Source: Eutreptiella sp. 'Long Island Sound 2002'
Taxonomy: Eukaryota; Protista; Euglenida
Assembly (NCBI GenBank): GCA_964036045.1
Contig: OZ038379.1
Location: forward strand, 57,908,001 to 57,972,000
Direction of reading: 5' to 3'
DNA: 64,000 bases
Part shown: in pieces, positions 200 through 52,237 of the stretch
Numbering within the stretch: position 1 is the first letter of the stretch
How the letters are laid out: every line of letters starts with the position of its first letter
Made by a program: the position numbers and the translations under genes
Notes under the pieces: model-generated
The model's database searches: none
Seen by the model: the letters and a program-made list of their open reading frames with translations, nothing else
Told to the model about the DNA's origin: nothing

Positions 200-2635
200 C
201 CGGCCTGGTCCAGGAACTCTTTGGCAAGGCAATGTGCCCGCTGGTTGAGGGTCGCCAGGGGGTCGACGGCTCATGTGGAGTGCTGGGAACGCACCCAGAC
301 GTCCCTGCAGGCAAGGTGGGAGCATGCTGAGTGGGCGTACTTGAAGTACCGACTGAGGATGGAGCGCTCCTTGGGGCCCCGGGTGAAGCGGTGCGTACAC
401 GTGTCTTGGCTGTCAGTGACGAAGATGACCGTGCCGCGCCAGTGTCACAGTTGCCCGAGGGACACTAGACGAGCCAACCATTCCCCATCCTTGCTGGTGG
501 GCTGGAACACGTGACAGGCGAAGCACAGGACCATCAGTTCACCAGCACATGGGTGCCAATAGGTGGCAGCCCCAGCCACCCGGTTGCCTCGTACCGCCGC
601 GTCGTAGGCAACATAGATGACATGCATGCCCGCCAGAGCTGCCAAGGAACCTGAGATGCGAAGCGGGCAGGGAGTGAGGGAGAGGTCTGGGACGTTGTGC
701 ACTTGTAGCCCGTGGGGCTGGAGGGCGGCAATGAGGGTCGGCGTGTTGGAGAGGGGACGGCCATCATGCAGAAGGTAATGGGCAGCAGCCCGGGCCAGCG
801 GGTGCCTGCAATATGCCGCGTGGAGCATGGTGGACATGAGCTGGACGGCATTGTGCAGCGGTAGGAGCGGGCAGCCTGGACCACCGGCTTGCACGGGCGA
901 GTGGAGGAACCAGAGGGGGGTCCATTTGGGGAGTAGGTATGTGCGTCGCCAATGACGGCGGGCGACCACCTGTACGCTGGTGAGGTTCGCGGAGGGGAAA
1001 TATGCACCATGAGACACGTAGTTGAAGGATGATAGGGCGTACATGGTGAAAGCCCGGATGCGTAGGAGGGGGTTCATGCGGTGTTCTGCGCCCGCTCGTG
1101 CCGCTACTCGCTTGAACTTGCGTAGGAGCCGCCCCACCGTCTGGCTTACTGGCAGTTGGCTGAGAAGGGGGATACCGACGAGTGTGGGTGTTGTGCGCTC
1201 GGTGTGTGTGTCGAAGCCGGGGACTTCCAGGCGCTGCAAGGCAGGGGAAAGGGCTTGAAGTCTGATGGCGGTGCACTCCAACTTGTGGGGGTTGGGTGTA
1301 CGCCCGACGGCTCGGGAGTACTGGACACAATCGTGCACTGCCTGGGTCAAGCGTTGCAGCGTGGGGGCCAAGAAGATGCGGTCGTCGCTGAAGCTGGCAC
1401 GTGAGCAGGGGAGCAGACCACGTGTGCTTGGGACCATCATGTCAGTGAATTGCCGCATGGTGGTGTTGAGGCATGTTTGCGTGCCCTGAAAGCACTGGTC
1501 GGCAGCATCCCTGATTGGCGCCCTCTCCGGTCACAATAGGCTCCGTGAAGCCCACATCTGTCAATATCCGGATCTGAAGGCCTGCGTAGTACGCGCCGAA
1601 CCAGTGGCCAAAGTTCCAGGTGCCAGGAGTGAGCTGCAGTGTTTCTGTCGCTGCCTGTCTAGGTATGCGGAAGTAGGCATGTGACTCGTCCCATTTGGCC
1701 AGAGTGACTTGGGATCACTGCAGTAGGCTGCAAAGCATAGCCGCGCGGACGGCGTACACCATGAAGGGGGGCTAAATCTCTTTGCGATAAGCGAACAACT
1801 CCGGGGTGGCGTTGCCTGATAGCTCGAGAGTGGCCCGTATGAGCTGCCACGCCGAGGCGGCTTCAAACGAGGCTAAAGGAGATGACACCGAAAGAGGCCT
1901 GTGGGACTCGAAGAGGTGGGCAACTTTTGGGGCGCCTTTGTATGACCCATACTGTACCGCTGTGCTGACAAAGGTGGCGACGCCATGCCGTCGTGCCTGC
2001 GCGATGCGTTGGCAGGCCCCATGGAGGCCTTTCTCTGCGCCATGGAGGATGCCGGGGGGGGAATCATCTACTGCTGTGGTCAGAGAGTGGAAGCGTTTGA
2101 GTGCTGCATGCACATGATATGGATGCAGTGGCCAAGGGGCTGCGAGGTCGCTAGCGAGTCGGACGAGGTCATCCTTGTTCGACGGTGAGCGTCCATGGTG
2201 CAGGGCGAGGAGGACCAGGTTGCGGGGCAGGTCCGTGGCCGGTTGCCAGAGCGCTTCCCACGGCTGCACGGTAGATGTTCTCCGCAAGGCCGCAAAGTCT
2301 ACGAGTACATGGCGGTCTTGTTGGACCCCCAGGGCCTGTCGTTGCGTCTCCGTTAGTTGTGCACGCGCGTAGGGCATGTGGGCATCCGGTCGGGGGAGGA
2401 TGCCTGCATATGGTCGGAGGGGCTTGCTGGGGGGGCGACATATCGATGGCCACGGCATCAATGGCGACACGTTGGAGGGCTTCAGTTTTGGACAGGGTCT
2501 CATGCGCAGCTCGCCGGGACCTGAGGGTCCCAGCAATGCGGTGCAGCTGGGATTGGTCGTAGGGGGGCGGGGGCAGGTGCAGCTTGTCGAGCAGGGAGCG
2601 CGCGCTGTCGCGGGCGAGGATGTATTGGCGGGCAT
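200..2635 (-). pseudogene. Reverse transcriptase + RNase H domains of LINE ORF2 (frameshifted)
   Basis: ORFs 1772..2635 and 445..1458 carry RT subdomains with catalytic FSDD, followed by RNase H VIYVAYDAAVRG...DGEWLARL...VIFVTDS. Confidence 0.88.
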
Positions 2636-2833
2636 AGTGATGGAACAAGTCGAGGTATTGATCCGGTGATGCTGGGGTGTGGTTGAGGCAACCCCACGTC
2701 ACCCCACGTCATTGACCACGGCCGCCAAGGATCGGATCTGCTGGCTGTCTGTAGAGCGCCACCTGTACCGTTTCCAGGCGAAGGGATCAGGCTTGGCATC
2801 CGTCGCGGTCAGCTACGCGAATAGCGCCAGGTG

Positions 2834-3610
2834 TCAGTGCCACAAGGGGAGGAGGGCATAGGTGCTGGACGACCATGACCCGTACAAGAGGATGTGGTCA
2901 ATTGCAGTGGCTGCTGGCACTGCAAGGGTGGTGGTGTAGTTGGTGGCGCAGTCGGCAGGCAGCAGCGGGGTGAATGAGGCCAGCGCCCCCGAGGGCCGCA
3001 GCACTTGCTCCAAGGGGGTGCCGGAATCACGCGGCATATTCATATCGGCTTGGATGAGGGCATACCGGAGTTTGGTTGTGGTACGTAGAGTGGCCCAGGC
3101 ACGCATGAAGCCGTGGCGCGCCCGATCAGGAAGCTTTGGGGGCAGGCGGGCACTGTTCACCAGGATATCTCCGTAGGCGCGCGTCGGAAGGAGCAGGGCA
3201 AAGTTCTCACGGGAGTCAAGGAGGGGGGGCGGGGTCTGTGCCGGTGGGGCACAGGGCGCGCGCCCATGCTATAGCCAAGCCCGTTCCTTGTCCGCTCACA
3301 TGGCCTGCTTTGTATGTCATGTGGGGCGGAAGTGCATCTGGGATGTGGTCAGGGTTCCAGACCTCTTGTAGTGTGACAATGTTAGGGGAGAGGGCGAGTA
3401 ACCAAAGGCGTACTATCTGCAGCTGGGACTCGAGGCCCCCGACATTGGCGCCAAACAGGCGCAAGGGCTGGAGGTCCTGGCCCACGGGGCTGAAGGACGT
3501 GGGGGCCAAGGCCAACATGATGCGGGGCAGCCCCGTAGTTGGCTGGGCGTCAGTCGCGTACGCATTGGTGGCCCCATGGCAGTGCACTGTCGTCAACGGC
3601 GGGGCATGAC
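2834..3610 (-). pseudogene. Apurinic-like endonuclease (APE) domain of LINE ORF2
   Basis: LRLFGANVGGL, IVTLQEVW, GTGLAIAW (ORF 3216..3962) and IQADMNMP, TNY...AIDHILL (ORF 2834..3160). Confidence 0.85.
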
Positions 3611-4467
3611 TGCTGTTGGCTAGATGGAATGGTGTAGCAGCGTGCGTAGGCCTCTCGTGTGGTGGGGGCTCCTCGCGATGGGTCGGGGCAAAAGGCCCGT
3701 GGGTGAGGGGGGAGGGGGGCATCGGCGGGCATGACCACAGTGTGCAGCATAGGGCGTGAGCAGGTTGGGCATGTGGACGCAGTGAGCACCACAGGCGTAA
3801 CGGGAGTCGCTGGCTGTAGAATCCAAGGGCCGTCTGGTCGGTCATGACGTCGGTACATCCATCGTGAACTACCGGTGCGGGGTACCGCACCTGAGTCTTG
3901 GTCCCAGAAGGTGAGCACGGTGGTACCCACTTGGACGGGCACAGACAGCAGGATACGTCCACGTTGCCGGGCCAGTTGGACTGCCTGGGCCAGCCGGTTG
4001 GCTAGTAGGGGATGAGCCAACGGATGTCTGGAACCGTCGGTTGGGGTTGTTTGCTGGGCACATGGGGGGGGCAGGACTGAAGTGGCCGTGCATTGCGGGC
4101 ATGGTCGGGGGCAGGTGTGCCATTTTGGGATAGGGGTGCCGCAACTGGGACACACAGCATCGTCAGCGGGGCCACAGGGGGTCTCATCTCGAGGCGGAGG
4201 CGCGCCGCTGAGCCCAAAATCCTCGGCGACGACATGCTCGATGGGTGTCGTCGAGGCGAGTTCCTGCAGGGCGTGCAGTAGGGCGTGGACAGGCGCGCAG
4301 CAGGCTGGCAGAAAGGACGGGACGAGTAGTCACCTGTGACGGAGCCCCTCCCAAGGCATGCCGCGAGCGTACTGTACTGTGCGACTTGCCTGCTGGTCGA
4401 CACGTGGGACCGCTTGCAATTGAGCCTCTGCGTTGGCGGCCTTTGGGGGGTTTGTGGCGCGCGAGGG

Positions 4468-6582
4468 TCAGCCTTTGTTTTTGGCCCTGCATTGGGCCTT
4501 GGAGAGCTTGGGGGTGGTGGTGAGTTGGCGCTTCTTCGGTCGCGTCACCGGCAGGCGTGGTGCAGGGGGTAGATTGAGGTGGTTATCTTCGGCTGTGACG
4601 AACGGCTCCTCGTTGGGACCGTGGGCCACCAGGGTGCAGTTGGTCCCTGAGGGGAAGGTGTAAACGCGTTTAGGGGACGTGGTAAAGAGGTTGTTGTACA
4701 CCTCAGGGGCTATGGTAGCGAATCCAAAGCCTCGGGATACATCTCGCGGGTCGATGTACACGGGAGTGCCCAACTCGCTGGTGGACTCGACCGGGTCGCA
4801 TGCATCTAGTCCGGGGAGATACGCACGCACGACGTCGCCGGCATCGCCGTTGGGGGTTGGAACCCAGGGGTGACAGCGGTGGGAAGCGCTAGGGTTCGTG
4901 ATACACTGTGGGCAGGGGCAGTGGGGTGCTTTGTGGGGGGGGAGCTCCGATGGCGGGTGCATTAGGGCGGAGTGCGCCCGCAATAAACCAGTCCGTGGCC
5001 GAGGGGCTGGCTGCTGTGAGCGCTGCTGTGACTTCGCGGACAAGGGCCTCGTGGTGCGCGGTGGTGGTGACGAGGTCTAGAGCGCCACGCACGTTGCGGC
5101 GGAAGCTGTGAACGTCGACGGCCGATGCCATGGGGGTGAGTTTGGACGCGGGGCAGGCTTTCACTTCGACTGATGGCCGCGGCTGCTGCAGACCACGCGG
5201 TGAAGCCGCGTTGTTGAGCCGACATGATGATGGGAGCGAGTTGGCTCAGGGTGGCGGTGATAGTGGAGGCATCTATGGCGGGTCCATAAGCGGTCATGAC
5301 CTCTTTGATGAATTCCGTCAGCCGGACTCGGAGGCGAAGGCGCTACGATGCACAGCTGGCTGACCAGGCAGAATTGGCCGCCAGGGATAGCTCCGCGGAC
5401 TGTACCGCAACACGCGTTCCGAGATCAAAGCCCCATTTAGTGATGAGGGCGAACATCCCAGCTGCCATCACAGGGGCAGTAGTCTCAGGGAGTGTGCGAA
5501 GGGCATCAAGATGTTTCAGCACGTCAGCGTCCTCCATCACTCCACCGGAGTCAAGGAGACGTTTCCATGCGGGCGACGTCGCGGAGGATGCATTCGCACC
5601 TTTGTCTTCCGGTACCAGAGAGAGGGATGTCGGCCGGGTTCGGGCGTCTAGGGTGCACAGGGCCCCAGAGGTTTCGTGCTTGCCCAACTCCGCTTGCCAC
5701 TCACGGCAGGAAAGGGGCGCGGGTCCGAACGCCCAGCCGACCTTGTCGCCCTCCTTCGCGAACTTCAGAAGGTTGGCGTAGGCCAGGGTCTGCCCATTGC
5801 GGCCCGCTTGCCAGGAGGACAGCCAGTGCAGTGCCGCTACGCGTAGCAGCTTGGGTGTGACCTTCTCAGTCCCGGCTAGGAGGCTGACCATGCCGTTGAA
5901 GTCGAGTGCTGCGACCGGCCCATCTCCAAATTCGGAAAGATGGCTGCGACACCCACGGAGGAAGGCCCGTCGATCCTCTGGGCCAGCCTGTGCGGCCCAT
6001 TTCAGCAATTGGGCCATCAACTGGCGGTACGGCAGCCATTGATGGCGGGCATCATGTTCTTGCAACGCCTCCAATTCCATGTTGGTGATGTAGCCGGCTG
6101 TCATGACATACCACCAGAGCTGGGGCCCGATGAGCAGGGGGTTGGCCTCCAAGCTGATGAGCTTGACGTCCACCTTCGTCGCATGGTGTCGGACATCACC
6201 CAGAAGCTGCCTGTGCTGCGGGTCCTAGGTGACGCGCAACACGGGCCACGCTTCCGCAGGGCGAAGCTGTTCGCGTTGCTGTTCCGGGGAAAGGGAGCTG
6301 AACGCTGGGATGGTGTCTGTGGAGAAGGGGGCACGGTGTGGAGTGGCTGGAGGTGTCTTCTACGGCTCCACCACTCGGCTGCCCTCCGCTTCCGGGGATC
6401 CGGTCGGTCGCTGGCCCTGTGAGGGAACGCGTGCAGGGTCGGGTACACCGCGGGTCGGGCTGCGGTTGAGGGCTGCGGTGGAGGTGGTGGTTGGTGTGTT
6501 GGTCCCTGTGCGCAGCACGCGTTGGTCGTGCTCGGTCTGCGCGCGCCTCGGCGGTTGCCGCGATTCGCACCACTCTGGTCAT
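4468..6582 (-). pseudogene. LINE ORF1-like protein, frameshifted, with Cys/His cluster (CPCPQC...HRCH)
   Basis: Located upstream of APE on the same strand; ORFs 5343..6173, 4889..5164 and 4468..5043 appear to be one broken frame. Confidence 0.55.
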
Positions 6583-10239: not shown

Positions 10240-10767
10240 CCTTGGCCGCATAGGCACTCGGAACGGTGGGCCCGGGGCCGGCGCCGTCCCACTCCCATGG
10301 TGAGCGACTGGAGAGGGAATAGATGGGGAGGGTCTCCTCACCGGACTGCCGCAGATCGAAGAGGAACAACTTCCTCTTGGCTGCCTCCTTGTACCAACCC
10401 TCCTTGGCGAAAGTGGCGGGCTTGGGCTTCGTGGAAGTGATGCGGAGGGTGGTGGGCGTCTTGGCATTCACAGGGTAGGCAGCCATGTAGTTGCTTTGGA
10501 TCAAGGCGTGGTCGCTGGGCAAGCGGGTGGATAGGGACGCCAGCAAGAGCAGAAGTCCGCTCTGCTGGGCCGCATTTGGAATGCGGTGATGTCGGGGTTG
10601 CGGTGCACCGTATCTGCAATGAGGTCCGAGAGGGCACACAGGTCCCGGTCACGAAGGATGGACTTGGTGATGCGCACCCGGCCAATGGTCGTGCCCGGCG
10701 GCCAAGTCACGGCGGAGTTGGTGTGGATGGCGGTGTCGTGGAACGTCCTCCGGAAGGGAGCAGCCAC
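10240..10767 (-). pseudogene. Unknown protein remnant (one frameshift)
   Basis: ATG at 10767 after a pyrimidine-rich tract; ORFs 10501..10767 and 10076..10639 join near 10560 into one plausible frame. Confidence 0.35.
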
Positions 10768-26899: not shown

Positions 26900-29800
26900 G
26901 AGGAAGAGGGGCATGGGGTTGCAGTTCGGCGAGAGGGCGCGCCGTGGGGTGGTGGGAGGTAGGGCTGTTGGGGCGGGCGCGGGGTTGTTGCGGTTTTGTC
27001 CGTGCTTGGGCGAGCTGGGCGACAACCGCATTGTTTGCATTTGTCGCAGCACACACAATGGGATGTGTGTTTCCCACCCCTTCTTGCCTGCATGGCGTCC
27101 CTCCCTTAGCATGGAACCCGGTGGACACCCATGCACGACGATGGCTATGGAGTTTGTTGACCGGCAAGCTAAGGAGGCTTCTCCTTCGGTCCATGAGGCT
27201 TTCTAAGGCCTCCTTTCCAAGACGCTGGCAAAGTAGAGCGTTTATGGGGTAGCTTCCCCGGACGTGGAAGAAAAGACCAATTTTTACGAGGCGTTGCCAG
27301 ATACTGCAAGGTGCCTCGGCATTACGACGGGCTGGGCCAAGTACAAGGCCATCACAAAAATGTGGGACCTCCAATAGGCCCTCAATTGGACATACCAAAG
27401 TCCCGTTCCCTAGAACTGTGCCTCAGCGGCAAAGGATTTCCACCTACTCTGCACCATTGGCACTGCATCATGGCATCTATTGAGCCTTGGGTATGACATA
27501 GATGCTATGTTGCAAAATATTTCGTGGTTTTGGGGTGGCAACCTTTTGTGGGGACATTTCGCAGAGCATCAACCGCTGTTGTGAACCATCGGCACAAGGA
27601 GCATAGCAAGCGAAGGGGGGGGGGATTGTTTCACGGGGATGAGGTGCAAAAGATCTCGGGGCGTAGGTGGTCTGCTATCCATAGGGACACTAGTGTGCAA
27701 ATACAGTGCGAAACATGGCTTGTTGCATAATTGCATGTGTCTAGGGCTGTCAAGTGCTAAATGCACAAGTCAACGAAGGCACCAGGCCATTGCAAGATGG
27801 GTTGCATATTGCAACCGCCGTCTTGCAAGGAAGGCGTCCCAAGGAGGAAGGCCGTGTAATGAGCGTCGTCGCCCCGCCTAGTCCGGTGGATATTTCTACT
27901 CTGCCAAGCCTTCTTTTCGGCTTTCCAAGTCCCTTCAGTGAGCATGGAGCCCGCTCAAGGGTATTTGGACACCCCTATCACCCTCCTTGTCCACCGTTTG
28001 TCCCCTGCAAGGCTTGCATTGGCCTCCTCCTTGGCGACCACCCAATTCACGAAGTCGGTATCGATGACCTCTTGAATCGCGTAAACAAGAGACATTGGTG
28101 GTGGTTAGTTTCGTTCCCATCTAGGCCAACCTATCCTCTGTGGAACGGTGCCCAAGGCTATCTAGTACAAATCCTGAGCCGCCAATGAGCACTCTGCGAA
28201 AAGAACACCTTCCAATGGCCCCTCCAAAAAGACCCAAGGATTTCCATGGCCTCATCATCACATCTCGTTATGCTCAACATCCAAAGTCCCACAAAGAAGC
28301 GGGCCAAGCGGGCAAAATTAGCCAAGGCGATGGTGAGTTGGGTCCAATTGCCTGAAGCAAAGGGGTAGGCTTGTCTCCTGATGATGAATGTCAACGGGAA
28401 GGAGAGGACAATGGAGCTCACTAAATGCGGCCGGGAGACAATGCACTTGACCATAAGGATTTATAAGTTCCGACTTTCACGTTCTGGTCTGCGTTGCAGT
28501 CCTCATGCGCGAGGCCTCGCGCAAAAAAAAGCCCAGAAACTATATTTTTTGTACCATTCGGATGCGTTCGCATCTGATAGCGCTCGTTCACAAACGTCAC
28601 TGAAGCCATGTGTACCTAAGTTGTCATTGATTCATTCAAATTTGCCAGAAGCCGGCACCCCGGGGAGGCGCGAAAACTCTTCTTGAGCTTGGTTAGGTGC
28701 TGCGCTAAGCAGATTGCTTCCCCAGGCACCTTCTTTCTCCGAGTATCCGACATCATCTTGATTATTGGTGTGGTTTGCAGTACATTGCATTTTACTCGCG
28801 GCAAAATCAATTTTTGTGGCCCAAAAACACCCCCCAAAAAAAACCACGCATGGTAAATTTGTATTTTCTTTCCACAATTCAATTTGATTGATAGTCGACG
28901 GCGGGAAGATCAATTTTTCTTGAGCCAAAGCTACAAGGGTGGTCCCTGTCAAGCTCAAGGTCACATGTTGAGTGGACGTGCTTCGTGTGCCACCAGTGAC
29001 ATTCTTGTTTTTGCTTGAAACTTTCCAATGTTCTAGCCAGGAGTCATCAACAGCAATGCTGAAGGATGTACTCTGTGCAACACCTCCAACATATGTGCTC
29101 CTTTTGTTAGGAAGGCAACAACATTAGAAATGACTGCATAAATCATCAATTAGATTTCCAAGGCTTGTTTAGAGCGCTGAGTGTCCGCCCGCATAGACAC
29201 ATGGTACAATGTGATGAAGTCAACGATGCTTGTAATATTACTCTAGTTCAGCTGGCTGCTTGATTCGTAAATTGTACCATCATTACTTGTTTTTGGAGTG
29301 GCAACGAACTGTTGTATGTGCGAGGCCTCGCGCATAGATTCCCCCCAAAAATGCATTTTGTGTAGCCATTGGGACGCACAGGGGTGCAAATTCCTTACGT
29401 AGGAGTTTTTTTTGGTGTTTCAGAAACGGCTTGATTTTTTGCAAGCCAAAGAATGGCTTTTTGTGTGTTTTTTGACGCCCTGTATTTCTGGCACTTTCCG
29501 TCGTTTTATACCATGCCACTTGAGCCGCCTAAGCATAAGTCGAAGGGCCACCGGCCTTTGGCTATACCGTTGCAACGGCGTCATCCCATTCCACATGGCC
29601 CATTAACTCTTTCCAACGGACTTGGAAGTCCCGCTGTGTACAAAGAGGCCGGGTGTAGGAGCCACCGGGGATGGTGCACCGATACTCTAACCAGCAGAGT
29701 GTGTACAGGTCCGTGAGGGTTCCCCAAGAAGACTTCGGGCCATGCAAGTTGAGCACTAGCTCGCACATGGCGGTTGGGTAGAGTATGGAGGCGGCATATG

Positions 29801-30158
29801 CTTCAACGGCGCCCTTGCACACCTCACCCGTAGTGGCGGGGGGGGTGGCGGCGGTGATGTGTTGGATAGCATTATTCAATTGCCGCCATGCTAAGGGCCA
29901 AGATAGGTCCCACGTGGCCAAGTACTGGCCCACGTGGTCATCCTTGAGCCCCGTAGCCCCACTTAAATCCCATAGTGCCCTAGACAATAGGGAGGGGTGC
30001 TCCCTGCTTCCGAATGCGGCAAGCCGGGTAGTGACGGGACGTTTCATTAGAATGAAATACCAAAAATCTACGCGTGAGAGAGGGGAATATGCAACGATGC
30101 ACCATAAGCAATAGCAAGCATGCATGGCAAGGCCACAACATGGCACTTCGTGGTTCAT
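26900..30158 (-). pseudogene. DDE transposase-like pseudogene, paralog of 49263-51410, split by a 1.08 kb insertion and an intron
   Basis: 29562..30158 aligns to the N-terminus of ORF 50547..51410; 28158..28454 gives SFPLTFIIRRQAYPFASGNWTQL; intron 28208-28081; exon resumes AIQEVIDT...ASLAGDKRWTRRVIGV...AGSMLTEGTW; later KEALES. Confidence 0.8.
28458..29533. mobile_element. 1076 bp insertion flanked by CATAAG direct repeats, containing two GC palindromes
   Basis: cataag at 28452-28457 and 29534-29539; removing the insert rejoins WPFDL to VKCIVSRP (1 nt offset), matching WPWASWLRYIASQP of the paralog. Confidence 0.7.
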
Positions 30159-31087
30159 ATTATGTTGTTCTCGTATTTATCTACTCTAGGCTACAACACC
30201 CAAACAATCTAGTTCTAGGCTCTAGGCTCGAGCAACATTGGGTTTTTTGGTGTGTACCTAGGCTTTGGAGCATCAAGAGTTCCAAAAGGTTGGCATATAG
30301 GCAGCTAGCCCTAGATCCTAGGGCCTAGATGCCTTGGTCGGCAACATAGACCGACAAGAAAGGGAGGTTATTGAAGCAGGGTGCAGCCCGGGTGGAGACC
30401 ATCTTGGCAAAATTGGTGTAGGTGCCCTTTTCCCGGATTACTGTTGGCATTGGAGGCGAAGCGCGGGGGCATACGTGGTAGAAACGGTATTCCCGATGCA
30501 CACGCTCATAAAGAAGGGATAACGGCATAGCCGGAAGGTGGCGGTAGATTACGCGACAACCCCACAATAACCTGGTGGTGGTGGATGCAAACCAGCTGCC
30601 CATACTCCCTCGTAATCTACGTCCCGGATGTTGCGCACAAGCGGCTATGGAAAGGCTTCGGCCGGGCGAAGTGGGACAACGGGCCTAAGGGGGTAGAGCA
30701 GGAGTGGATCGTGCAGCGAAGGACATCATCGCCTTGGATGCTTTTGCAAGGCACCAACAGCAATGGTGTGCATTGTTGGCATTATCGCACAAAAAAACCT
30801 CCCCCGGGGACAGATCTGTGGATTCAGGTGGACATCGAGCGACCCATGGTGAAGGTGATGGTGTCATGGTGTCATGGTGTCATTTGCCAGGTCCGGCCCC
30901 CTCAGGAGCGGTTGCCTGCGGTCCCAGCCAGGCCATAGCAGCAAAATACCGTAGCAAGTGCAATGCCATGTCGCGCAGCGCACACACCCCCTCCCCCCCT
31001 TGTTCACTCTCTGTCCAAGGCCGCACGGCCCAAGCAGTCCCGCACGGGCCCCATGGCTCCGATGATGCGGAAGTTCTTCTCTTGTGC

Positions 31088-33819: not shown

Positions 33820-34514
33820 ATTGCGGAGTTTTTAGCAACGTTGGTTCGCCTCTCCGGGGTCACAAACCTCTTAGATCCACTTGTGGGCCACGTGCTAGCC
33901 CACTAGTCCTTCTTCTTGCCCCACTACAAGGCTAGATGGGGTGGAAGCCACCATGAATGATTGCCACCAACTCACGCGCAGTGTGGAGAAGGCAGGCACG
34001 TGCCTCTATGCCGAGAATTTTATGCCTCCCATCGTGTGTGTTGAACTTGTTGTGCGCTGGAAAGCCCCCAAGTCCAGCTTACACGTCCATGTCGCACTTC
34101 TTCACTTGGTAGGGTCTTCCATACTCATTTAAGACCAAGCTGTTGGTATTGCGGCCACTTTGCACGCGGGAGGCCCTTAACGTCGAGTGGGGAGCTCTTT
34201 GCCAACCAATGCAACTCGCACCCCCCCGTTACCGCCCACACCCTAGTGTCCTTGGGTGGCTCATGGCCCCTTCCCTCATGGGTCTACTACATTGACTCGC
34301 TCCCGGTTTTCCGCAGCACCATCGATTGGTCACAATCCCTCATTTTGATTGTGTGGTGTGATGCATACCCTTGCGCAAGGTTTAGCTGGAGCCTCTTGGG
34401 CGTCGCCTTGGCCAGTCGCGGGGCCAACCCGCGTACTAATGGGTAATCGGGATGGCGGCACGCAGGGATAAGGATATGGTTCAACTGGGCGCCATTTCGC
34501 GGGTCAACCTCCAA
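33820..34514 (+). pseudogene. DDE transposase-like pseudogene exon 1 (paralog of 49263-51410)
   Basis: LYAENFMPPIVCVELVVRWKAPKSS, IDWSQSLILIVWCDAYPCARFSWSLL, WVIGMAARRDKDMVQLGAISRVNLQ, then GT at 34515 at the same intron position as the paralogs. Confidence 0.8.
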
Positions 34515-35939
34515 GTACCTTGCTAGTGCTCCATTGATGCCCCGCTGTTTTTTTTTTTGAAGGTTCAAACTTCAAAAATTCTGTTAGAAAATGCGCGTTG
34601 CCGTCGGAACTGGTTTTTTAATTAAAAAAAAGGATTTGAACGTTCAAATTTTCGGTTTTTTTTTACATTCTCGAGCACATCTACAACACGGGTTGCTTTG
34701 TGTCGGCCGTTGTTGACAGGTCCGCCACCGTACGTTGCGCTGCGGACGATGGGTTGAGCAACAACAAAGGCACTCTACACATCGCGATGTTGCCCATCAC
34801 CAAGCCTACCTTTAGCACGGCCATAGCATGCAAAATGCGTGTCGTGTTGATGACCATCTGCTCCGATGGCCCGGGACCACGTTTTTGTGTGCATCTTGCA
34901 CTGCATCATGATAATTCGGTGCTTCACAATGCAGTTCTCGGAGGGGCTCTGCGAGGAACGTGGACGAAGTTCCGCAGGAGTGCAGGCAGTCCGGCACGGC
35001 GCGTGGACTGTGGGGTGTCTTGGGTCGACCGCTTCTGCTCATGGGGACGAGTTGTACCACCTCATACAGGCATGGGAGTAGCCGCGAGATGTGTGCTTCA
35101 TGGAGGTGAGCCACCCGGCTCGCGACCCCATCTCGGACATGTGTGAGTTGTTGTTGCAACTGTCCCGCAAATTCTAGTTGGGGCCCCTTGCGGTGTTCTG
35201 CGAGGAAGGGGGTCGGTTTCGCGCGCACGTGGCCCCGTCCTTGGGGTCACACTATCTACTATTCTTTGAGGAGGATTGCGACCCCTTCACTTGCAAGGCG
35301 CGGTAGCCACTACCAAGCTTGCGGGGCAGCGGACGTGACATGAGTCTGCCGCCCCTTCCGGTCAGTAGTAGCAAGTTGGCAGCCAGCTGGCCCATCCACC
35401 TAATCCCTTTAAGTTGTTGGAGTTTGTTGGCGGAAGCGGCTGAAGTGCTCAGCGGGTTGTTCAGCACAGCCCTGTACGAGTACTATCTCCACCGACATGC
35501 AGTTGATAGGTCGAACGCCGCCGCCACAAATGCTGCTTTGTGCCGGACTAGACCGTGTGTATGGGGGGCCTGCTCTCCTATGTGGCGCAACAACCCAGCT
35601 CCCAGGCTGCTACGGGCGAGTCCCGGGTGCGACCCTCGCGCACCCCGAGTCGTCGCGGCGGTACCCACGAGCGGACGACAACCTCGAGGACGGCGCCTGC
35701 ATAGTCCATAGGCTGCTCCTCTTTTTGGGGGGGCTAGGGGGCACGCTTGTACGGTGATAGACATTAGAGCGGTGGGGCTAGTTGGGGCTGGGAGGGCGAG
35801 GGTGTGAGGGGTGCTACCGAGTGACACCCCCTTGGACGGGGTGGCGGTCGCCCGTGAGCAGCTCTCCGTGGAAGGTAATCCTAAGGCCCCAAGCCTGTGC
35901 GTCCTACGCTCTGGACTGTGGCAATGTGTGAGGCCCATG

Positions 35940-44720: not shown

Positions 44721-46049
44721 ATATAGACACAATCATTCCAAGGAGAAAAACTTCACGGGACGCAGGTGTTTCCTTGTATTTTGTCTTCACTGAACTCTTT
44801 TTCTGCAAGTGGTATTGAACAGGGCGCATCATCAACCCCATGGTACAAGTTTTGCCATCCACAAAACATAAGGCAGATACACGGATTGATATTCTGTGAA
44901 GTAGGACCATGGTTCTGTTCTTTCGTGGCACATTGCATGCATCTTTGGTTTGTTGCGTTCTGCATCGGCAATTCTGCTAATGATGTCTTTTTTGACAAGC
45001 ACAAAACATTTTTAATGAGGACACTTTTGTTTATGCCACTTATGGCGTGTCGGATAATGTCTTTGCTTACGCAGCATGAAGCATCACCTTAGAAGTGTGT
45101 CCTCACACACTTCCATTATTAAGTGCAAAACATAGTGTGGATTGGCATCACAGTGCATTTTTTTTTGCAGTTCGTTGTGCATTTCCCACCACAACAACAT
45201 GGCATTACATACAAGTGCCCTCCTGCTGCAACACGCACTTAGTGCCGTCCCTTTGCAGCTAGGTTCATTACTGTGTGCCACTGAGCCACAGCAGTTGGTT
45301 CTGGTCCAAGCCCTTGCGCTCAGCGACCGAACCTGATCCCAACCACTATGTGCCCCTGAGCCGCAGCACTCTGTTTGTGGTTAGAGCCATAGCGCTACTG
45401 ACCCAAACTCTCCCACAACGGCATCATGTGGATCAGCTGGCGAGCATGAGGAGAAGCCGGCCTGGCACTTTGAGTATCAAGGGCCTGCGCTTGAAACTAG
45501 CACGGATCCTAGTTCCGGTTTTTGAGTTTTTTTTTGGTCATTCCACCCGAAATCCAAGCCTAAATGCTTTTGTTGCGGGTTTGTTCTAGTATTATTCTAG
45601 CGACGGCCGGCGGTGATGGCTAGAACAATACTAAGGCACTTCCCGACAGTGGCCAGAACAATACAAGAACAATACTGCGGAACTATGTAGAATGCTCCCA
45701 CCGCTCGTCAAAGAGAAGCTGATATGTCTACCATAAGCAACCGTGGCCAAGCACAGGTTCCCGATGCTCCCCGGGCTACAAGACGGGTGCCCTACGTCTC
45801 GCTATGGTGGGCTAACCGGGCTAATTGGGCTAACCCACGCCAAGGGACCGGTGCCGGCCTCGAAGTGACCCTCCAAGTGACCATCGCAATGGGGGGCTAA
45901 CCGGGCTAATGAGGCTAACCAGGAGTGGAGGGATGGGTTGGCGGAGGGGGGGGGGGGGGCTCTGGGAGATAGCCGCATGCACTAGTACTTTCATTTGGTA
46001 GGTGCTCCGTCTCCCTTGTCTCTCCCCTCCTCCTCTCAATTGTCCCCTG

Positions 46050-47600
46050 TGTCCTCTGCCACCGACCCATCTGTTGGGTGCTCAGGGGCGTCCTCCTTTG
46101 TCCTGGCTCCCCTTGGCTCCGGAATCCTGCAACACCACGTCCCATCCCCCTAGCACCAACTCCTCATCCTCATCCCCCGTCACGTTGCAGCTGCTCACCG
46201 TCCCCACACTTCCCCTTTGGCCCACGGCACATGCCGGACCTCCCTCGGGTCGGGCAACTCGCCATAGGGGCTACCCATACCTTTGCTCGAGTTGAGGGGG
46301 ATTGTTGGGGGGGGGGGAGTCCTCGGCCGATGGCTTGGCCCTCTTTTTCTCCTTCCCCCTTATCTTCTTCCCACTTGGCTCTCTTCCCCCATTCATGTCC
46401 CCTTTTTGCGCTTCTCCCTCTCCTCATTTTTCTTCTTTTGCTTTTGCTTCTGCTTCTCCTCTTGCGGCTTGGCCTTGGTGTTGGCCTTAGCTTTGGGGCC
46501 TTCTTGGGGGGCACCCAAGGGGACCTTTGGTTGGGCAGGCACAATGGTGGGTCCTCCGTTGCTACTGCTTTTGCGAATGTGTCTGCTGTTGCTACTACAA
46601 ATTCTATCGGTGGTGCTCGCCCCCTCCAAGTTGGACCACCTTGTCCGCCGGGTGTCCAACCCGGAGTTCCGCCACCCTGCCTCCCACCATGTCAAATTAA
46701 CCCCCCATTGACAAGAGCGCCAAGCTGTGGTCCGTTGCCAGCATGGAGTAGAGCTCGGAGAGCCGTACCAGGTGGTGTACCCCCGTGCCCCAGCCCCCCA
46801 TCCGTCTAGACCACCCGCATGACCCACATAAGCATTCCCGAAGCAACCCCGCATGTCCCTCGAGGTAGGACGGGGGCTGACACGGGGGTGCACGTGGCAC
46901 GGAAGGGACCGATCACGGGAATGGTGCCTTCATACCCCCTAGATTGCTAGCATCGCGGCGAATTTGCCCCTCTGCCACAATCACCCCCCATGTGGAGGTC
47001 CGCCCCACCACGTTCATCCCCATGATTTCGAACCACCACCAACACACGCAGAGGAAAAAGAAATCCCCCTCCTTCTCCCGCGTTCATGGACTCCCGGTTG
47101 AAGACATTGAGTTTGGCCAAGTCAAAGATTTTCACGCCCTCCTCCATAACCCCCCGGGGGGCCCTACCTCAACCTCCCCCTCTTTCATCCACCCGCACTC
47201 CCCTTGCACAATTCTTACCCCCCAAGGACCACCTTGGCATCCTCCTTGCTGGCCCCTCACCCGTCAAGTGTCTACAATTTCGGGAATTCCATACGGAAGG
47301 ATTGACACATTCTCGTTTGGTTCTAGACTAGATGTCCTAGTCTGGTCTAGTATGCATCTACGGAATGGTGGCTTGCGGTAACTAGAAGAAACCTAAAATG
47401 GAACCCTCGGAGTACGCGGACAATATGTGGAGACAACACCTTACAAATGTCCTTTCATGGTGTCCCAAGTGTACCCAAGAACTTGTCACAATTGGCCATG
47501 CTGAACACCCACTGACCTGCTAGGGAGCGGGCCATGCGGCCAAAGTTGGCTAGTAACGGCCAAAGTTGGCCAATAAAATGCCCAGCTGGGCCACATTGTG
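46050..47600 (-). pseudogene. DDE transposase-like pseudogene with Pro/Lys-rich C-terminal replacement (sister of 49263-51410)
   Basis: FLFPLRVLVVVR, GNGPQLGALVNGG (cf. TPAPQVGSLYNEG), LDTRRTRWSN (cf. LATRIEGWGS), then PKAKANTKAKPQEEKQKQKQK; many frameshifts. Confidence 0.55.
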
Positions 47601-48590
47601 GCAGAGCATTTCATGAGAACAACACAATAGAAAATTTGAATTCCCATGGAGTACACATGTAACAATGTAGCAGGGGCACCAACAACAAGCATGCACGACA
47701 TTGCCATTTGGTTTCTCGTCCTAGTAGTGTTCTCATCTTAGCCAGAACATTCTCGGCTGGAAGTTCTAGCCTAGAACCAATTTGGGTGTTGTAGCGTGTA
47801 CCAATGGTGTCCGACAAAGTTTTCTTTGGCATATGGTGGTGTCCAATAGGGGGTGGGGTTTTTGTGTGGTGGCGTCTGACAACAGAGGGGCGGCGGGGGT
47901 GGGGTGCTGCGGGGCTAGCATCCGGTGTCATCCGGCAAACGAACATTGCCATGTAAGTGTGGCAAACATAATGCTTCCCTTGGTGAACGCTACACCTCAC
48001 CAAGCCAGCCGGCATGACAGAGCCCACCTGGCCAGGCCGTGGCCTACCCGATCATATTTGAGGATGTTGGGACCACGCAATTTCCAAAGTGCCTTGAGCA
48101 ATAGGGAGCGACCCTCCTCATTTTAGGATTGTGTAGGGGGCTGGTGGTAGAGCGTTTCATGAGACCCACACAATAGAAAATTGAATTATCATGGAGTACA
48201 CGTGCAACATTGTAGCACAGGCACCAACAACACACACAACAGGCATGCACGATAGTGCAAATGAAATGACAAGTTGACAATTTGGTTTCTTGTTCTAGTA
48301 CTATTCTAATCTTAGCCAGAACATTCTCAGCGGGAAATTCTAGCCTAGAACGAAATTGGGTGTTGTAGCGTGTACGAATGGTGTCCGGCAGGTGTTCTTT
48401 GGCATATGGCGGTGTCCAATAGGGGGTGGGGTTTGTGTCTTGTGGTGTCTGGCAAGAGAGGGGCTCCGGGGAGGGGAGAGGGGGGGGGGGGGGGGCTAGC
48501 ATCCGGCGGCATCCGGCAAACGAACATGGACAAGTTACTGCGGCGAACGTAATGCTTTCCTTCCTGGCTGTTTTTGCACCTCACCACCAT
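47600..48590. repeat. Tandem duplication (about 550 bp period), each copy containing a TIR-like end of the DDE family
   Basis: 47600-48010 aligns with 48147-48590; gaaccaatttgggtgttgtagcgtgtaccaatgg (47774-47807) resembles the right TIR at 51885-51918. Confidence 0.85.
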
Positions 48591-49262
48591 CCCCGAATGT
48601 GTTTAGCCCGCGTGGAGTGGGGCACCAAGCAAGGTTGTGATGGCTGTTGCGAGGGCGGACAATTGCCACGGGCAAGGGTGAATTAAGTACTGGCCAAGCC
48701 ACTGGCCAAATGGCAAATAAACACGTTTATGTGTTTTTTTTTCGAAAAACGCCCTTTTTGGGGGGATAACCGTTGTTTATCGGCGTTTATTGATGTTTAT
48801 TGACATTCCCGCATATATTGCTGATGGTTTCTGTACCTTGTGTGATGTAATTTTAGAGCATTTGTGCATTCCCTTGGTGCGCGTTTAAAACCCAATGTTG
48901 TTCCGGCCAAATTGTTCCAATGTTCTAGGCTATCTGGCCGGAGCAAAAAAAGTTCAAAATTTATTTACCCCCCAACCAAGCCTACCCGTACATGGTGGCA
49001 AAATATGTTGTTTTGCTAGCCTTGGGGGTCCCCGCTGGTATGCTCATATTTGTTGCCCGGCGCGTTGCCACGTGAAAAAAACTTGTTTTCAAAAACAGTT
49101 TTTGTTAGAACACCATTGGAACACCGCTGGAACAAGTTATTGGAACGTCGCCGGAACAAGCACTCTATAACAAGAGCAAAGCACAAGGAAGGGTAAAATG
49201 GTAACATACATTGTTGTGTAGGGTGCCCCCGGGGGCCCATCGGGTTAGTCTCTTGTTCTCAC

Positions 49263-51410
49263 CTAAAAGTCCTGCGTGGTCGGGGGCCCGGCGGGCGCCC
49301 CCGAACTCTTGTCACCCGCCCCACTATCCCCCCCATCTCCCTCACCGACCACCACCCCTTCACCCACCACCCCTTCACCCTCCACCCCTTCACCCACCAC
49401 CCCTTCACCCTCCACCCCTTCACCCTCCACCCCTTCTCCCACCACCCCTTCACCCGCCACCCCTTCGACCTCCATCCTTTCCCCCTCCACCCCTTCGACC
49501 TCTTCCCCGACGCCCCCATCCCGGTTAGCCCCGGTAGCACCCAAACCTGCCCCTGGTCCATCCCCTTTGTCTCCCCCGTCCCCGTCCCCGTCGTTGCTCT
49601 CGTCCCCCTCCTCGTCCGCGTCCGCGTCGTCCCCTTGTCCTCCTCCTCGGCCGCCATCATCTTGGCGAGAAACTTCTTCGCCTGCGTCTTGGTTTTCCAA
49701 ACCGACGCTCTCGGGATGGCGAAGAGTTCGGGGTCTTTGGGGAAGGCGATCCACGTCTCCCCAACCCCGGGGGGGCCACCCGCGGCAAGGGCCTCTTTGC
49801 CCTGCTCGATCCCCCACTGCCCATTGTCCCGAAAAACTACATACACTTGCTCCCCCGCTTTGTATTTGCACCCCCCCCCCCCCTCTTGCCTTTGGCTTGG
49901 CCTTGGGTTGGGGTTGGGGGGGCTGGGCCTTGGGTTGGGGGGGCGCGGCTCTCTTGGGAGCCTTGCGAGGGGGTTTGGTGGGCTCCTTGGCCGGGGGGCG
50001 GGGCTGGGGCTCCTCGAACGCCGAGGAGTCGGTGGTGGACCCCGAGGAGGAGTCCGTTGAGGAGTCGCTGGGCGACTCCTCGCTGGAGGACTCCCCCGGG
50101 AGCCTCTTCCTTTTTTGGGGGGCTGGTTTGGGGGCGCTCTTGGGTTCCCGCTTGGGGGGGCGTTGGGGTTTGGGTTTGGGTTTGGGTGCTGTTTGGGGGG
50201 CTGGGTGGGGGTTCGGGGGTTGGGGTTGCACGGGCGGTGCACACGCGGGCGGGGGGGGGGGGGGCTCTGCGGCCACTTGTTGGCAGTGCGGCGGCGCTGG
50301 GGACATGTCGCCAATGCTGCCCCACCCCTCGATGCGCGTCGCGAGAACGCTGCCGCGGGCTTTGCCCCGCCACACAGCGGCGTCGGAGTCCCAAATCCCC
50401 TCGTTGTACAGTGACCCCACTTGTGGGGCCGGTGTGATCCCGACAATGCGGCGCACCCACGGGGAATCACCACCGAGCCAGGCATCGGCCGCTTCCTCAT
50501 GGGAATTGAAGACCACCCGGTGGGTGTCCACGACCTCCTGGATGGCCTAAGAAAAAAACATCAATTTTGTTGGAACCAAATTGTTCCGGTGGCGGTTCCA
50601 ACGAAACACTTGAACGTCGCCGGAACGTCGCCGGAACAAGTTATCGGAACGTCGCCGGAACAACACGGTGTGTGCGCGGCACACCTTAATATTGTCTTCC
50701 CAAAGGGTTGCTAGGGTCGCCATCGCTTTGTCCCCGCAGATTGCGAGGCCGATGACCCACACGCAGGCGGGAATTCGTCCCCAAAGGCCCATGTTGGCGA
50801 TGGACACAGACAATTGGGACCACTCCCCGCTTGCGCAGGGGTAGCCATCCCCCCTGACAATGAAAGTCAGGGGGAACGACCAATTGATCATGCGGCACAA
50901 CGGGGGTTGGCTAGCAATGTAGCGCAGCCATGATGCCCACGGCCAACTGATGCCCGTGGCCTTGGGATCCGAAGTGCTCACCGCGGGGGCCAGCTCCAAG
51001 GGGGCCAGTAGAACTTGCCAGCGCTGCTGGAAAGCCCTCTCAAAGCAAATCGGACGGGCGAATGGAAGGCCCGTGGTCGCGGTGTACTTCAGCCCCCGGA
51101 GAGTGTACACTTCCGAGAGCGTGCGCCAAGCGGATTCGGGCGCACGCAGGTTGAGGATGAGCTCGCAACACTCATCCGGGGGGAGCACCTCGGAGGCGTA
51201 CTTGGCGATTGCCCCCTGCTGTATCTCTCGTACACAGCTTGGTTGGGCCAAGCGCACGGCCACCGCAAATTGGCGGCGGGCGTGTGGAGAGGAGATGGCC
51301 CATTCCGCTATGAGCTCCCCAACAAGATCCCCGTCCCGGAGGCCAACAGCACTAGCCAAATGGACGAGGTGGGTGGTTAGTGGCGCAACGCGGGTTTGCG
51401 ATCTAGCCAT
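49263..51410 (-). CDS. Two-exon DDE-like protein: N-terminal half with D1 (LTFIVRGDGYP) and D2 (WLGGDSPW), Pro/Lys/Ser-rich linker, Tudor-like domain, acidic EGEG tail
   Basis: ATG at 51410; exon 1 is 242 codons; GT-AG intron 50684-50547; exon 2 is in frame with ORF 49263..50531; the Tudor-like segment KYKAGEQVYVVFRDNGQW...WIAFPKDPELFAIPRASV is in the adjacent frame after a poly-G run at ~49870. Confidence 0.75.
50547..50684 (-). other. 138 bp phase-0 GT-AG intron
   Basis: attaag|GTGTGC...ttttttttcttAG|gccatc; splicing removes the in-frame TAG and restores alignment with the 28 kb paralog (AIQEV). Confidence 0.88.
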
Positions 51411-52237
51411 GATGAAGCTACAACAATGAACGACGAAGCGAAATTTGGCAATGCATACCTACAGGGGAAGATGCCCGTAGACCCACCGAGCATTCAGGCA
51501 AGGAACAAATACCAAAATGGGACCCTAGGCATGGCCACAATGCACAAATCAAACGGGAGAATGGGGACACCAACGTTGAAAAGTCATACAACGCTGCGTC
51601 TGAACTACAAGAAACAGTAGGCTTGCAAATGGATACAAAAAGTTCGAAATGTGTACACCTAGTGGAAGGTGGCACCAACGGCTCACAATATGGCAACATG
51701 GCCCCGATGGGAAAGACAAGCCTTGGACGCGTTATAAAGGCAAGAAAGAGACAAAAAACATCATTTACGAACTTGGAAACTCATGGTGATGGATCTGGTT
51801 ATCTGGCCTGCGACACTTGTTCCAGTGGTGTTCCCAACGAGATTGTTCCGGCGGGAATTGTTCCCATTGGGAATATTCTAGTCGGGAACAACATTGGGTT
51901 TCAAACGCGTACCAAGGGTTTGTGCACGTTTGAGGGTACCAAAGTTAGAATGTGGTGCAGGGAAGGGTGAATAGTATTGTGTGTCGGCCGGCATGGTGCA
52001 TCATAGCGGGAAGATCTAGCATGTGGCTCATGGCATGAAAGGACACACGGACACACCATGTACACTCATTCATGCCCCGCATTCATGTCATGTGCATGTG
52101 TGCATGTGTGCCATTAACATTTTTTATTGTTCCGTATATCCCTGTGTCATACTCCTTTTCCCTTCCTCATTGTTCTCATGGGTTCTGAAGTATGGATGCG
52201 CCCACTTGGCCCGGTTGCGGCTGAGGGTGCGGCTTGA

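Follow-up and report, generated by a model that had tools for sequence, protein, structure and literature searches.

The interval from 48871 to 51918 of the window (the whole 64,000-nt stretch of Eutreptiella sp. 'Long Island Sound 2002' contig OZ038379.1 analyzed here) very probably derives from a ~6.5-kb cut-and-paste transposon by internal deletion, which has left it non-autonomous, and the odd gene within it would be a by-product of that deletion. The original prediction held that this gene keeps half a DDE core and adds a chromatin-reader domain. The supposed reader segment belongs to a separate 3' gene of the 6.5-kb parent, brought against the transposase gene by a 3,421-bp deletion. The 'half-DDE plus reader' gene is no new kind of protein, and its value for annotation is cautionary, in that one internal deletion can make a convincing chimeric open reading frame (ORF). 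Coordinates of all features are collected in Table 1.

Table 1. Features of the deleted element and its target site, in window coordinates.
Feature	Position	Strand	Remarks
Target site duplication (TSD), 2 bp (TT), left copy	48869..48870	.	flanks read TT-element-TT
Terminal inverted repeat (TIR), 3' end in gene orientation	48871..48904	+	terminus CCCTTGG; 34 nt, 32/34 complementary to 51885-51918
Subterminal GGAACA/TGTTCC repeat cluster, 3' side	48899..49160	.	
Acidic Gly/Glu/Val-repeat tail and stop of parental 3' gene	49263..49632	-	in frame with the assembled fusion ORF
'Tudor/KOW-like' segment (CKYKAGEQVYVVF...ETWIAFPKDPELFAIPRASVW...)	49633..49870	-	native to the parental 3' gene; out of frame here
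Homopolymer, 13 G on the coding strand	49871..49883	-	frame shift ahead of the Tudor-like segment
Parental 3' gene from codon ~57 (ARGSVLATRIEGW...), then Pro/Lys/Ser-rich linker	49884..50360	-	arrangement identical to P0274-P0278
Deletion junction	50360..50361	.	parental positions 1560-4980 (3,421 bp) missing; 1-2 bp (AG) microhomology only
First 62 codons of transposase exon 2	50361..50546	-	carries the second candidate catalytic Asp
Putative intron	50547..50684	-	138 nt, GT..AG, phase 0; built from GGAACA-type repeats
Transposase exon 1	50685..51410	-	242 aa; helical N-terminal region and first candidate catalytic Asp
Subterminal TGTTCC/GGAACA repeat cluster, 5' side	51818..51884	.	
TIR, 5' end in gene orientation	51885..51918	-	pairs with 48871-48904
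TSD, 2 bp (TT), right copy	51919..51920	.	

The element measures 3,048 bp between its TIRs, and its termini are CCC...GGG, with CCCTTGG at the start of every copy examined. No further TIR matches were found in the window (chance expectation 0), and the same TIR stands at the ends of copies L001, L004, L005, L010, L011, and L012. The earlier description of 34-bp TIRs (32/34) around one spliced gene holds, the gene being a two-exon gene on the minus strand. GGAACA/TGTTCC motifs occurred 14 times in the element, compared with 1.2 expected from shuffles, and were clustered at both ends and in the intron.

Four of the five complete copies have a 2-bp TSD (TT, TC, CC, and CA); L003 and L004, which are rearranged or truncated, are uninformative on this point. 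An empty-site allele was recovered in X6 and X8 contigs from public runs, which join 48868 to 51919 and so skip 3,050 nt, that is, the 3,048 bp of the element plus 2. Because this allele exists the insertion is polymorphic, and the parent transposon family could be active today and accessible to experiments. A longer, 8- to 10-bp TSD (TTTGTGCATT versus TTTGTGCACG), pointing to MULE or hAT elements, was considered and rejected: the empty-site contigs already carry TTTGTGCA twice in tandem, the joint skips the element and 2 nt, and four other copies show a 2-bp duplication or none. Neither a hAT-type (8-bp) nor a MULE-type (8- to 11-bp) TSD was thus found.

Within the gene, both acidic motifs of the original prediction are present, RGDGYP in exon 1 (D188, codon 50847-50849) and LGGDSP, the GGD motif, in exon 2 (D269, codon 50466-50468), and they fall on the family's two best-conserved Asp columns (65/74 and 58/58, respectively). 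The 138-nt intron between them is probably spliced, judging from a gap-free alignment of the spliced product across the splice point with the intron-less homologues P0150 and P0221; among RNA contigs over the element no spliced form was seen, and those covering the intron were unspliced. Transposase homology does not stop right after TRIEGW, as had been proposed, but after ...AAVWRGK (aa 304, window position 50361). The element protein has no helical insertion domain and no conserved D..ES.N..LK motif, and the CILH and PDGEE blocks conserved in the family are likewise missing from this copy. The third acidic residue is therefore absent, as predicted, and only the first two Asp are kept. Without that residue and the whole insertion domain, the fusion protein would be unable to catalyze transposition; since both TIRs and the GGAACA subterminal repeats are kept, mobilization in trans is still possible, and full-length relatives could provide it. 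The paralogue at 27-30 kb does extend further, as had been claimed, and is itself degenerate.

Comparison with full-length copies accounts for both parts of the gene. The parent, represented by L001, L005, and L012, is ~6.47 kb long, and these copies are 97-98% identical to the window copy, the closest being L005 (97.8%). L001 matches element positions 1-1559 (97.3%) and 1558-2947 (97.1%), but the two segments lie 3,421 bp apart in it, and all three full-length copies show 97-97.8% identity on both sides of this one 3,421-bp gap. Past the junction point the parental transposase continues from ...WRGK into DVV...CILHCCMAMGRL...PDGEE...DIVESLNRFLK. In the window copy, transposase codon 304 is instead joined in frame to codon ~57 of the separate parental 3' gene, the sequence after the junction corresponding, from codon ~57 on, to parental ORFs with the start MEDIQVNPSD. 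Both halves of the gene are thus of parental origin and meet at a deletion. The ends and the internal sequence next to them are shared with a longer, coding-complete element of the same genome, in agreement with the earlier reading of a non-autonomous TIR transposon.

One gene of the parent would be a two-exon DDE transposase of about 590-670 aa; the parent probably also carries a coiled-coil ORF and a 3' gene in which a Pro/Lys/Ser-rich linker and a short beta-rich segment precede an acidic tail at the end. A single 3,421-bp deletion would have cost the element its coiled-coil ORF along with the C-terminal half of the transposase and the beginning of the 3' gene, presumably by abortive gap repair or end joining, for which 1-2 bp of microhomology is typical, leaving two reading frames that would have been joined in phase by chance. 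An alternative is that the deletion or the fusion frame is an artifact of long-read assembly, through repeat collapse or homopolymer errors; we regard this as extremely improbable. Repeats are dense in the region, and contigs of other runs disagree with the window on homopolymer length at 49871-49883 and near 50251. However, no long repeat that might promote collapse lies at the junction, which has just the AG microhomology, comparable independent deletions occur at other loci, the flanks and TSD are coherent with the empty-site allele, and the homopolymer doubt touches only the frame of the 3' part and not the deletion. No contig bridging the junction was present among the contig pieces listed.

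Downstream of the junction, ARGSVLATRIEGW comes from the parental 3' gene itself, and P0274-P0278, which share the arrangement, begin upstream of it at MEDIQVNPSD.... Three proteins (P0275, P0278, and P0282) read in frame into the Tudor-like segment. In the window copy a frame test placed the segment outside the frame of the assembled 669-aa ORF, and two indels relative to other copies flank it (13 G versus 12, and one base missing after 49632). The G run at 49871-49883 is 1 nt shorter in an X8 contig and five X6 contigs, and a run of 12 G would bring the fusion ORF into CKYKAGEQ.... The acidic tail matches the tails of P0278 and of the L001 3' ORF. The fused ORF stays open for 669 aa, a possible hint of function; this GC-rich stretch, however, has every frame open for >400 aa.

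The 'Tudor-like' identity itself drew no sequence support from Pfam, PDB sequences, or the Atlas. The segment matched no Pfam family at E<=5 to 10 and, among PDB sequences, gave a weak galectin match only (E 0.018), with no stretch passing alone; in the Atlas the best Tudor/Agenet cluster ranked 30 with a score of 0.58. Language-model Atlas searches gave no score above 0.65, whether the query was exon 1, the Tudor-like segment, or the upstream portion of the 3' gene. The 3' beta-rich segment of family A showed no significant similarity to that of family B. A 2OG-Fe(II) oxygenase signal was likewise looked for in the 3' gene of the parent and not found.

These observations bear on the proposal that the fusion is a functional, selected product, namely, a catalytically dead protein that binds the element ends as a repressor, helper, or chromatin-targeting factor in the manner of the P-element KP repressor. 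Truncated P-element transposases are established repressors. The two parts are fused in frame and the ORF is open, a helical N-terminal region of ~150 aa, potentially DNA-binding, is retained along with the 5' region of the element, and the tail of the 3' gene is kept in all deletion derivatives. We nevertheless consider a selected function very unlikely. Exon 1 has a pN/pS of about 1 (0.8-1.2) relative to the parents, so that its divergence is neutral with no sign of selection, the supposed reader domain is out of frame with no detectable Tudor signature, and no spliced transcript was seen among the RNA contigs. Nor does the kept 3' end point to selection on the protein, because any mobilizable derivative needs it. 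A second copy with the junction was not present in the sample, and the other derivatives have different breakpoints.

The copy sample comprised seven copies and 322 ORFs. It included three A-family deletion derivatives with three breakpoint pairs, the missing segments being 577-3969 in L010, 1569-4600 in L011, and 1560-4980 in the window copy. L011 is 95.6% and 92.6% identical to the window copy, below the full-length copies (97-97.8%); its left breakpoint is 9 bp off (1568 versus 1559) and its right breakpoint is different. None of the 322 fetched family ORFs contained the junction, whereas parental left context was found in 11 and right context in 6; the junction being absent from these ORFs, the fusion looks like a one-off. 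The copy at 46-48 kb, said to switch at the same point, belongs to another family (~50% amino acid identity), and its transposase homology ends about 50 codons earlier, after ...IPEIVDT and before the GGD motif. The idea of a propagated truncated-plus-fusion subfamily therefore fails on its own terms in this sample, with three differing breakpoint pairs and no second ORF that carries the junction.

It is also very unlikely that the deletion form is a propagated non-autonomous (MITE-like) subfamily missed by this small sample. The intact TIRs, subterminal repeats, TSD, and empty-site allele indicate that such a copy could have transposed, the left breakpoint of L011 is only 9 bp away, and copy-number information is weak, as the best runs in word-based searches hold 50-64% of the element's words. 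Against this stand the different right breakpoint and lower similarity of L011, the 0/322 count, and X8 (organism B) contigs that reach the junction point and run into parental sequence on both sides. We therefore retain the single internal deletion as the origin of the window copy.

The interest lies in the parent, whose transposase has, by its predicted fold, a RAG1-type architecture that neither Pfam (with its 2025 RAG1 domain models) nor PDB profile searches pick up. A model of the catalytic core plus helical insertion domain, based on a deep alignment with fragments trimmed by a local HMM (A3), reached a pLDDT of 76 and a pTM of 0.80, with residues 48-85 (strands 2-3 of the RNase H core) poorly resolved; an earlier model (P0087 with alignment A1) had a pLDDT of 52.6 and was poor outside the insertion domain. 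The best 48 PDB matches to the model were all RAG1, BbRAGL, or HzTransib, RAG1-labeled Atlas clusters matched at a TM of 0.60-0.69, and one Plavaka cluster was among the structural neighbors (TM 0.54). The modeled core and insertion domain of the parent transposase thus show the RAG1/Transib fold. The candidate triad consists of two Asp, those of RGDxYP and GGD, and the Glu of D..ES.N..LK, three conserved columns whose conservation and spacing suggest catalytic roles. In P0150 numbering these residues are D47, D128, and E359, and their presumed counterparts in RAG1 are D600, D708, and E962.

Sequence searches, in agreement with the earlier view that no named superfamily fits, matched no named model. 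Pfam searches with single proteins and with sets of 49 and 150 family members (E<=10 for the 150) returned nothing, including for RAG1 and RAG1_RNase_H, the Transposase_21, Plavaka, and KDZ models gave no match, and PDB sequences searched by phmmer and by a family profile (150 sequences) yielded nothing for the transposase. MULE/IS256, suggested by the motif around the last Glu (S-N-D-I-V-E-S-L-N-R-F-L-K), was ruled out by the lack of a Pfam match, the 2-bp TSD, and the RAG1-type structural neighbors. Conserved Cys/His columns are C190, C208-x-x-H211, C311, and H321-C322; no conserved CxxC or HxxxH pair occurs in the family columns.

In public environmental and genome data the parent family forms 1,157 clusters at 50% identity, all unannotated. 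It is relevant to how broad and how old the RAG1/Transib/CACTA ('CMCT') assemblage is, and to which features of that assemblage (zinc motifs, cut spacing, and accessory genes) are ancestral. One tentative reading, possible though far from favored, is that these transposons make up a deep sister lineage to Transib/RAG1, divergent in sequence and abundant in protists, with a different zinc-ligand pattern and a 2-bp staggered cut, and accompanied by a coiled-coil gene and another conserved gene. If true, this lineage would extend the RAG1 fold well outside animals and offer a new outgroup for the evolution of end recognition and target-cut spacing in RAG1/Transib. As a weaker sub-case, deletion fusions of the transposase N terminus with the 3' gene tail may act as trans-dominant regulators.

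Among known systems, the window copy resembles the internally deleted Ac/Ds elements and P-element derivatives (KP) in having termini shared with, and 97-98% identity to, an autonomous element, one missing internal segment, minimal microhomology, differing breakpoints, and a chimeric ORF that results from deletion. It differs in that the parent belongs to another transposase lineage, and the regulatory role of the KP protein has no counterpart in the evidence here.

With RAG1, ProtoRAG (BbRAGL), and Transib (HzTransib), the parent transposase agrees in the order and roughly in the spacing of its candidate Asp, Asp, and Glu residues, and the predicted model has the RAG1-core-like three-dimensional architecture. 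The motif around the last acidic residue, like D/E-x-x-E-S-x-N-K/R, presumably also resembles that of RAG1. In contrast, there is no sequence-level match to a Pfam model or PDB chain even with the 150-sequence profile, the TSD is 2 bp in the parent family rather than the 5 bp of Transib, and the termini are CCCTTGG rather than a CAC-type heptamer. In place of CxxC or HxxxH zinc motifs, the parent family keeps G-C, C-x-x-H, and H-C, and its extra genes show no RAG2 likeness as far as examined.

[quoted passage not shown] The parent family differs from this clade in not having C(2)C and H(3-4)H as conserved columns, in its CCC..GGG rather than CA..TG termini, and in the absence of a Transposase_21, Plavaka, or KDZ Pfam match. 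It is like the clade in its DDE transposase, where a long insertion separates the second Asp from the Glu, in its RAG1 likeness by structure-aware comparison, and in a 2-bp TSD within the 2-5 bp range, and like CACTA in forming multigene elements with subterminal repeats. Given its 2-bp TSD and CCC...GGG termini, the parent family is an unnamed lineage near the CMCT clade and not Transib proper.

As originally predicted, the element is bounded by 34-nt TIRs (48871-48904 and 51885-51918) with 32 of 34 positions complementary and encloses one gene; this gene lies on the minus strand, and a further match to the TIR was neither found nor expected by chance within the window. In the assembled sequence, splicing gives an ORF of 669 aa. 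No spliced RNA was seen for the intron, and contigs of two metatranscriptome runs extend into it. Support for the intron/exon model comes from an ungapped alignment of the spliced product (...LWEDNIK|AIQEVVDT...) with P0150 and P0221, two homologues that have no intron. The element carries 14 copies of the hexamer GGAACA/TGTTCC (1.2 expected from shuffled sequences), concentrated at both ends and within the intron. Acidic residues D188 and D269, the first two of the three candidate catalytic residues, are present in the protein and the remaining conserved set is absent. The observation behind the original prediction was largely correct.

Gene features of the window element, and complete copies of its family (A family) with their flanking dinucleotides.
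Feature	Coordinates	Strand	Description	Flanks (left/right)
Exon 1	51410..50685	minus	242 aa	
Intron	50684..50547	minus	138 nt, GT..AG, phase 0	
Exon 2	from 50546	minus		
Window copy			A family, complete, without parental 1560-4980	TT/TT
L005			A family, complete, full length, with reverse-transcriptase-bearing insertion	TC/TC
L010			A family, complete, without parental 577-3969; most diverged	AC/CG
L011			A family, complete, without parental 1569-4600	CC/CC
L012			A family, complete, full length, 6,852 bp	CA/CA

The ORF calls contained 81 relatives of exon 1, none annotated and every one from a Mb-scale contig of a single ENA assembly. The full-length locus L001 was matched at 97.3% by element positions 1-1559 and at 97.1% by positions 1558-2947, but 3,421 bp lie between the two segments in that locus. 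The joint falls between codons K304 and A305 (50361|50360), with a microhomology of AG only. Beyond ...AAVWRGK, the parental protein continues through ...GTPSLKAAGCS..., ...CILHCCMAMGRL..., ...PDGEE... and ...MFSNDIVESLNRFLKQAFNEHSARGGG..., and the transposase is followed 3' by a coiled-coil ORF and then by a 3' gene. Intact copies of this 3' gene (P0275 and P0278) begin MEDIQVNPSD..., include ...MMDYVA|ARGSVLATRIEGW..., and proceed from a Pro/Lys/Ser-rich linker through CKYKAGEQVYVVF...ETWIAFPKDPELFAIPRASVW... to an acidic tail. Searches of the 3' gene detected no sign of a 2OG-Fe(II) oxygenase. Because the parental 3' gene contains the post-joint sequence, the whole window protein after residue 304 is native sequence of this separate gene, and the similarity noted as far as TRIEGW does not reflect homology to the transposase. 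The flagged element is an ordinary, apparently one-off deletion derivative.

A propagated truncated-plus-fusion subfamily had been proposed; the derivatives differ in their breakpoints, and none of the 322 fetched family ORFs contained the window junction (parental left context was found in 11, right context in 6). The window copy is nearest to the full-length copies (97.8% to L005 versus 95.6% and 92.6% to L011), and its deletion form therefore had an independent origin. Contigs from the public run X8 that arrive at 50360/50361 run on as parental sequence on both sides. Another copy in the window, at 46-48 kb and said to switch at the same point, belongs to a second family (B family, ~50% protein identity), and its transposase homology stops right after ...IPEIVDT, ~50 codons ahead of the window element's breakpoint and short of the GGD motif. 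A copy can be mobilised only with its 3' end, so all derivatives keep it, and the 'Tudor-like' part therefore recurs. Against three parents, the exon 1 that remains has diverged neutrally (pN/pS 0.78-1.18). A dead chromatin-reading fusion protein carried by a propagated subfamily is not supported.

Contigs also point to other deletion forms. Those of a second public run, X6, jump 179-180 nt within exon 1 (51035-51214) at high summed depth, with ends that are not GT..AG on either strand, suggesting an abundant family sub-variant with an in-frame 60-codon deletion. An X8 contig runs from the 3' subterminal repeats into the intron repeats (49157-50681), leaving out 1,523 nt and including 19 filler letters; it represents a further deletion form, with breakpoints in GGAACA-type repeats.

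The assembled fusion ORF and the 'Tudor-like' segment (about 49633-49870) are in different frames. The 13-G run at 49871-49883 has 12 G in an X8 contig and five X6 contigs; with 12 G the ORF enters CKYKAGEQ... yet then misses the acidic tail. One base is also absent after 49632 relative to six X6 contigs. Both indels may be either mutations or homopolymer errors. The proposed reader domain found no support: Pfam gave no match of any kind at E values up to 10, a PDB sequence search returned nothing relevant, and the best Agenet/Tudor cluster in the Atlas search ranked only 30th (score 0.58). The corresponding segments of the A and B families showed no significant similarity.

No Pfam model matched any of the 49 or 150 family members at E ≤ 10, in a Pfam copy that included Transposase_21, Plavaka, KDZ and the recent domain models of RAG1, and a 150-sequence family profile found no PDB chains. 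When 1.84 billion cluster representatives were searched exhaustively with a profile, 1,157 clusters passed E ≤ 1e-3 and 729 passed E ≤ 1e-10; these are without exception unannotated fragments, drawn from genome, metagenome and Logan assemblies. Structure was modeled with AlphaFold2 for the 434-aa, intron-less P0150 using an evenly covered alignment, A3 (pLDDT 76, pTM 0.80). The best 48 Foldseek matches in the PDB were all to RAG1, amphioxus BbRAGL or HzTransib (E values down to 1.4e-5). In the ESM Atlas, a search by shape reached TM 0.60-0.69 with RAG1-labelled clusters and with unnamed clusters from animals, and 0.54 with a cluster of Plavaka. Structural comparison values were 14.0 for the RAG1 core (371 residues; model 1-412 versus RAG1 503-1004), 13.4 for BbRAGL, 9.6 for both HzTransib and the P element, and 5.3 for Hermes. 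The most conserved columns, in P0150 numbering, were D47 (RGDxYP), D128 (GGD, 58/58), C190, C208-x-x-H211, D259-G-E261, D356-x-x-E359-S-x-N-x-x-L-K, H372 and RGGG. From conservation and the aligned ranges, we infer that D47, D128 and E359 match RAG1 D600, D708 and E962 in order and rough spacing. The parent family is an uncatalogued, moderately interesting RAG1-fold transposase lineage with a 2-bp TSD.

P0150 lies on near-identical 1.8-1.9-kb contigs from five separate runs, with ~270 nt 5' and ~300 nt 3' of the ORF, and resembles either a transcript or a short conserved unit without the N-terminal region. Among these contigs are loci L006-L009, which come from four Logan runs and are ~1.85 kb in length.

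The B-family copy at 27100-30270 (minus), about 60% identical in amino acids to the B-family locus L002, has a ~1.1-kb insertion in exon 1, several stops, an altered first catalytic Asp motif (RRQAYP versus RGDAYP) and an inverted portion (27138-27750). A third, far more diverged and frame-shifted relative of this transposase lies at 33820-35282 (plus; 27% over exon 1, 36% over the CILHC region). The decayed B-family deletion derivative at 46000-48400 (minus) has a duplicated 5' leader (about 48.0-48.5 and 47.6-48.05 kb) and retains only exon-1 fragments, the first ~8 exon-2 codons, a Lys-rich linker and a remnant of the beta-rich segment at the 3' side. Directly upstream of the L002 element are ~27 tandem copies of a ~211-bp repeat (L002:48-5766), with one inverted copy downstream (10450-10660); the array is either part of the element or a satellite into which it landed. 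The insertion in L005 (4927-9612, ~4.7 kb) carries an RVT_1 gene and is flanked on either side by a ~19-bp duplication of transposon sequence (parental 4428-4446). A truncated A-family copy is preceded, ~1.2 kb upstream, by a piggyBac-type transposase gene (DDE_Tnp_1_7; L004:6394-7425).

All copies have the termini CCCTTGG...CCAAGGG. Contigs of X6 and X8 connect 48868 to 51919, skipping 3,050 nt (3,048 + 2); this joint is the empty-site form, and the insertion is therefore polymorphic among the sampled strains or populations. Together with the flanks, which are duplicated in the window copy, L005, L011 and L012 and not in L010, it sets the TSD of the family at 2 bp. An 8-bp TSD, from TTTGTGCA on both flanks (48861-48868 and 51919-51926), was rejected: the 8-mer is a feature of the target and was not made by insertion, because empty-site contigs already hold it twice in tandem.

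The CMCT clade comprises EnSpm/CACTA, Mirage, Chapaev, Transib, Plavaka, ESTA, Lanisha and RAG1, with features including mostly CA..TG termini and TSDs of 2-5 bp; ESTA is linked to RAG1 by HHpred only (Kojima 2025, PMC12730594). Like CMCT elements, the family described here combines a cut-and-paste DDE enzyme, RAG1-type in its core, with a short TSD, and its elements also carry subterminal repeats and additional genes. However, it lacks a sequence match to the named lineages, its termini are not CA-type, and it has no conserved CxxC or HxxxH pairs; its TSD of 2 bp, rather than 5 bp, counts against Transib. Since several membership features of each named lineage are lacking, the family, to which the original prediction had likewise given no superfamily name, is classed here as an unnamed lineage, within the CMCT assemblage or adjacent to it, and not as Transib.
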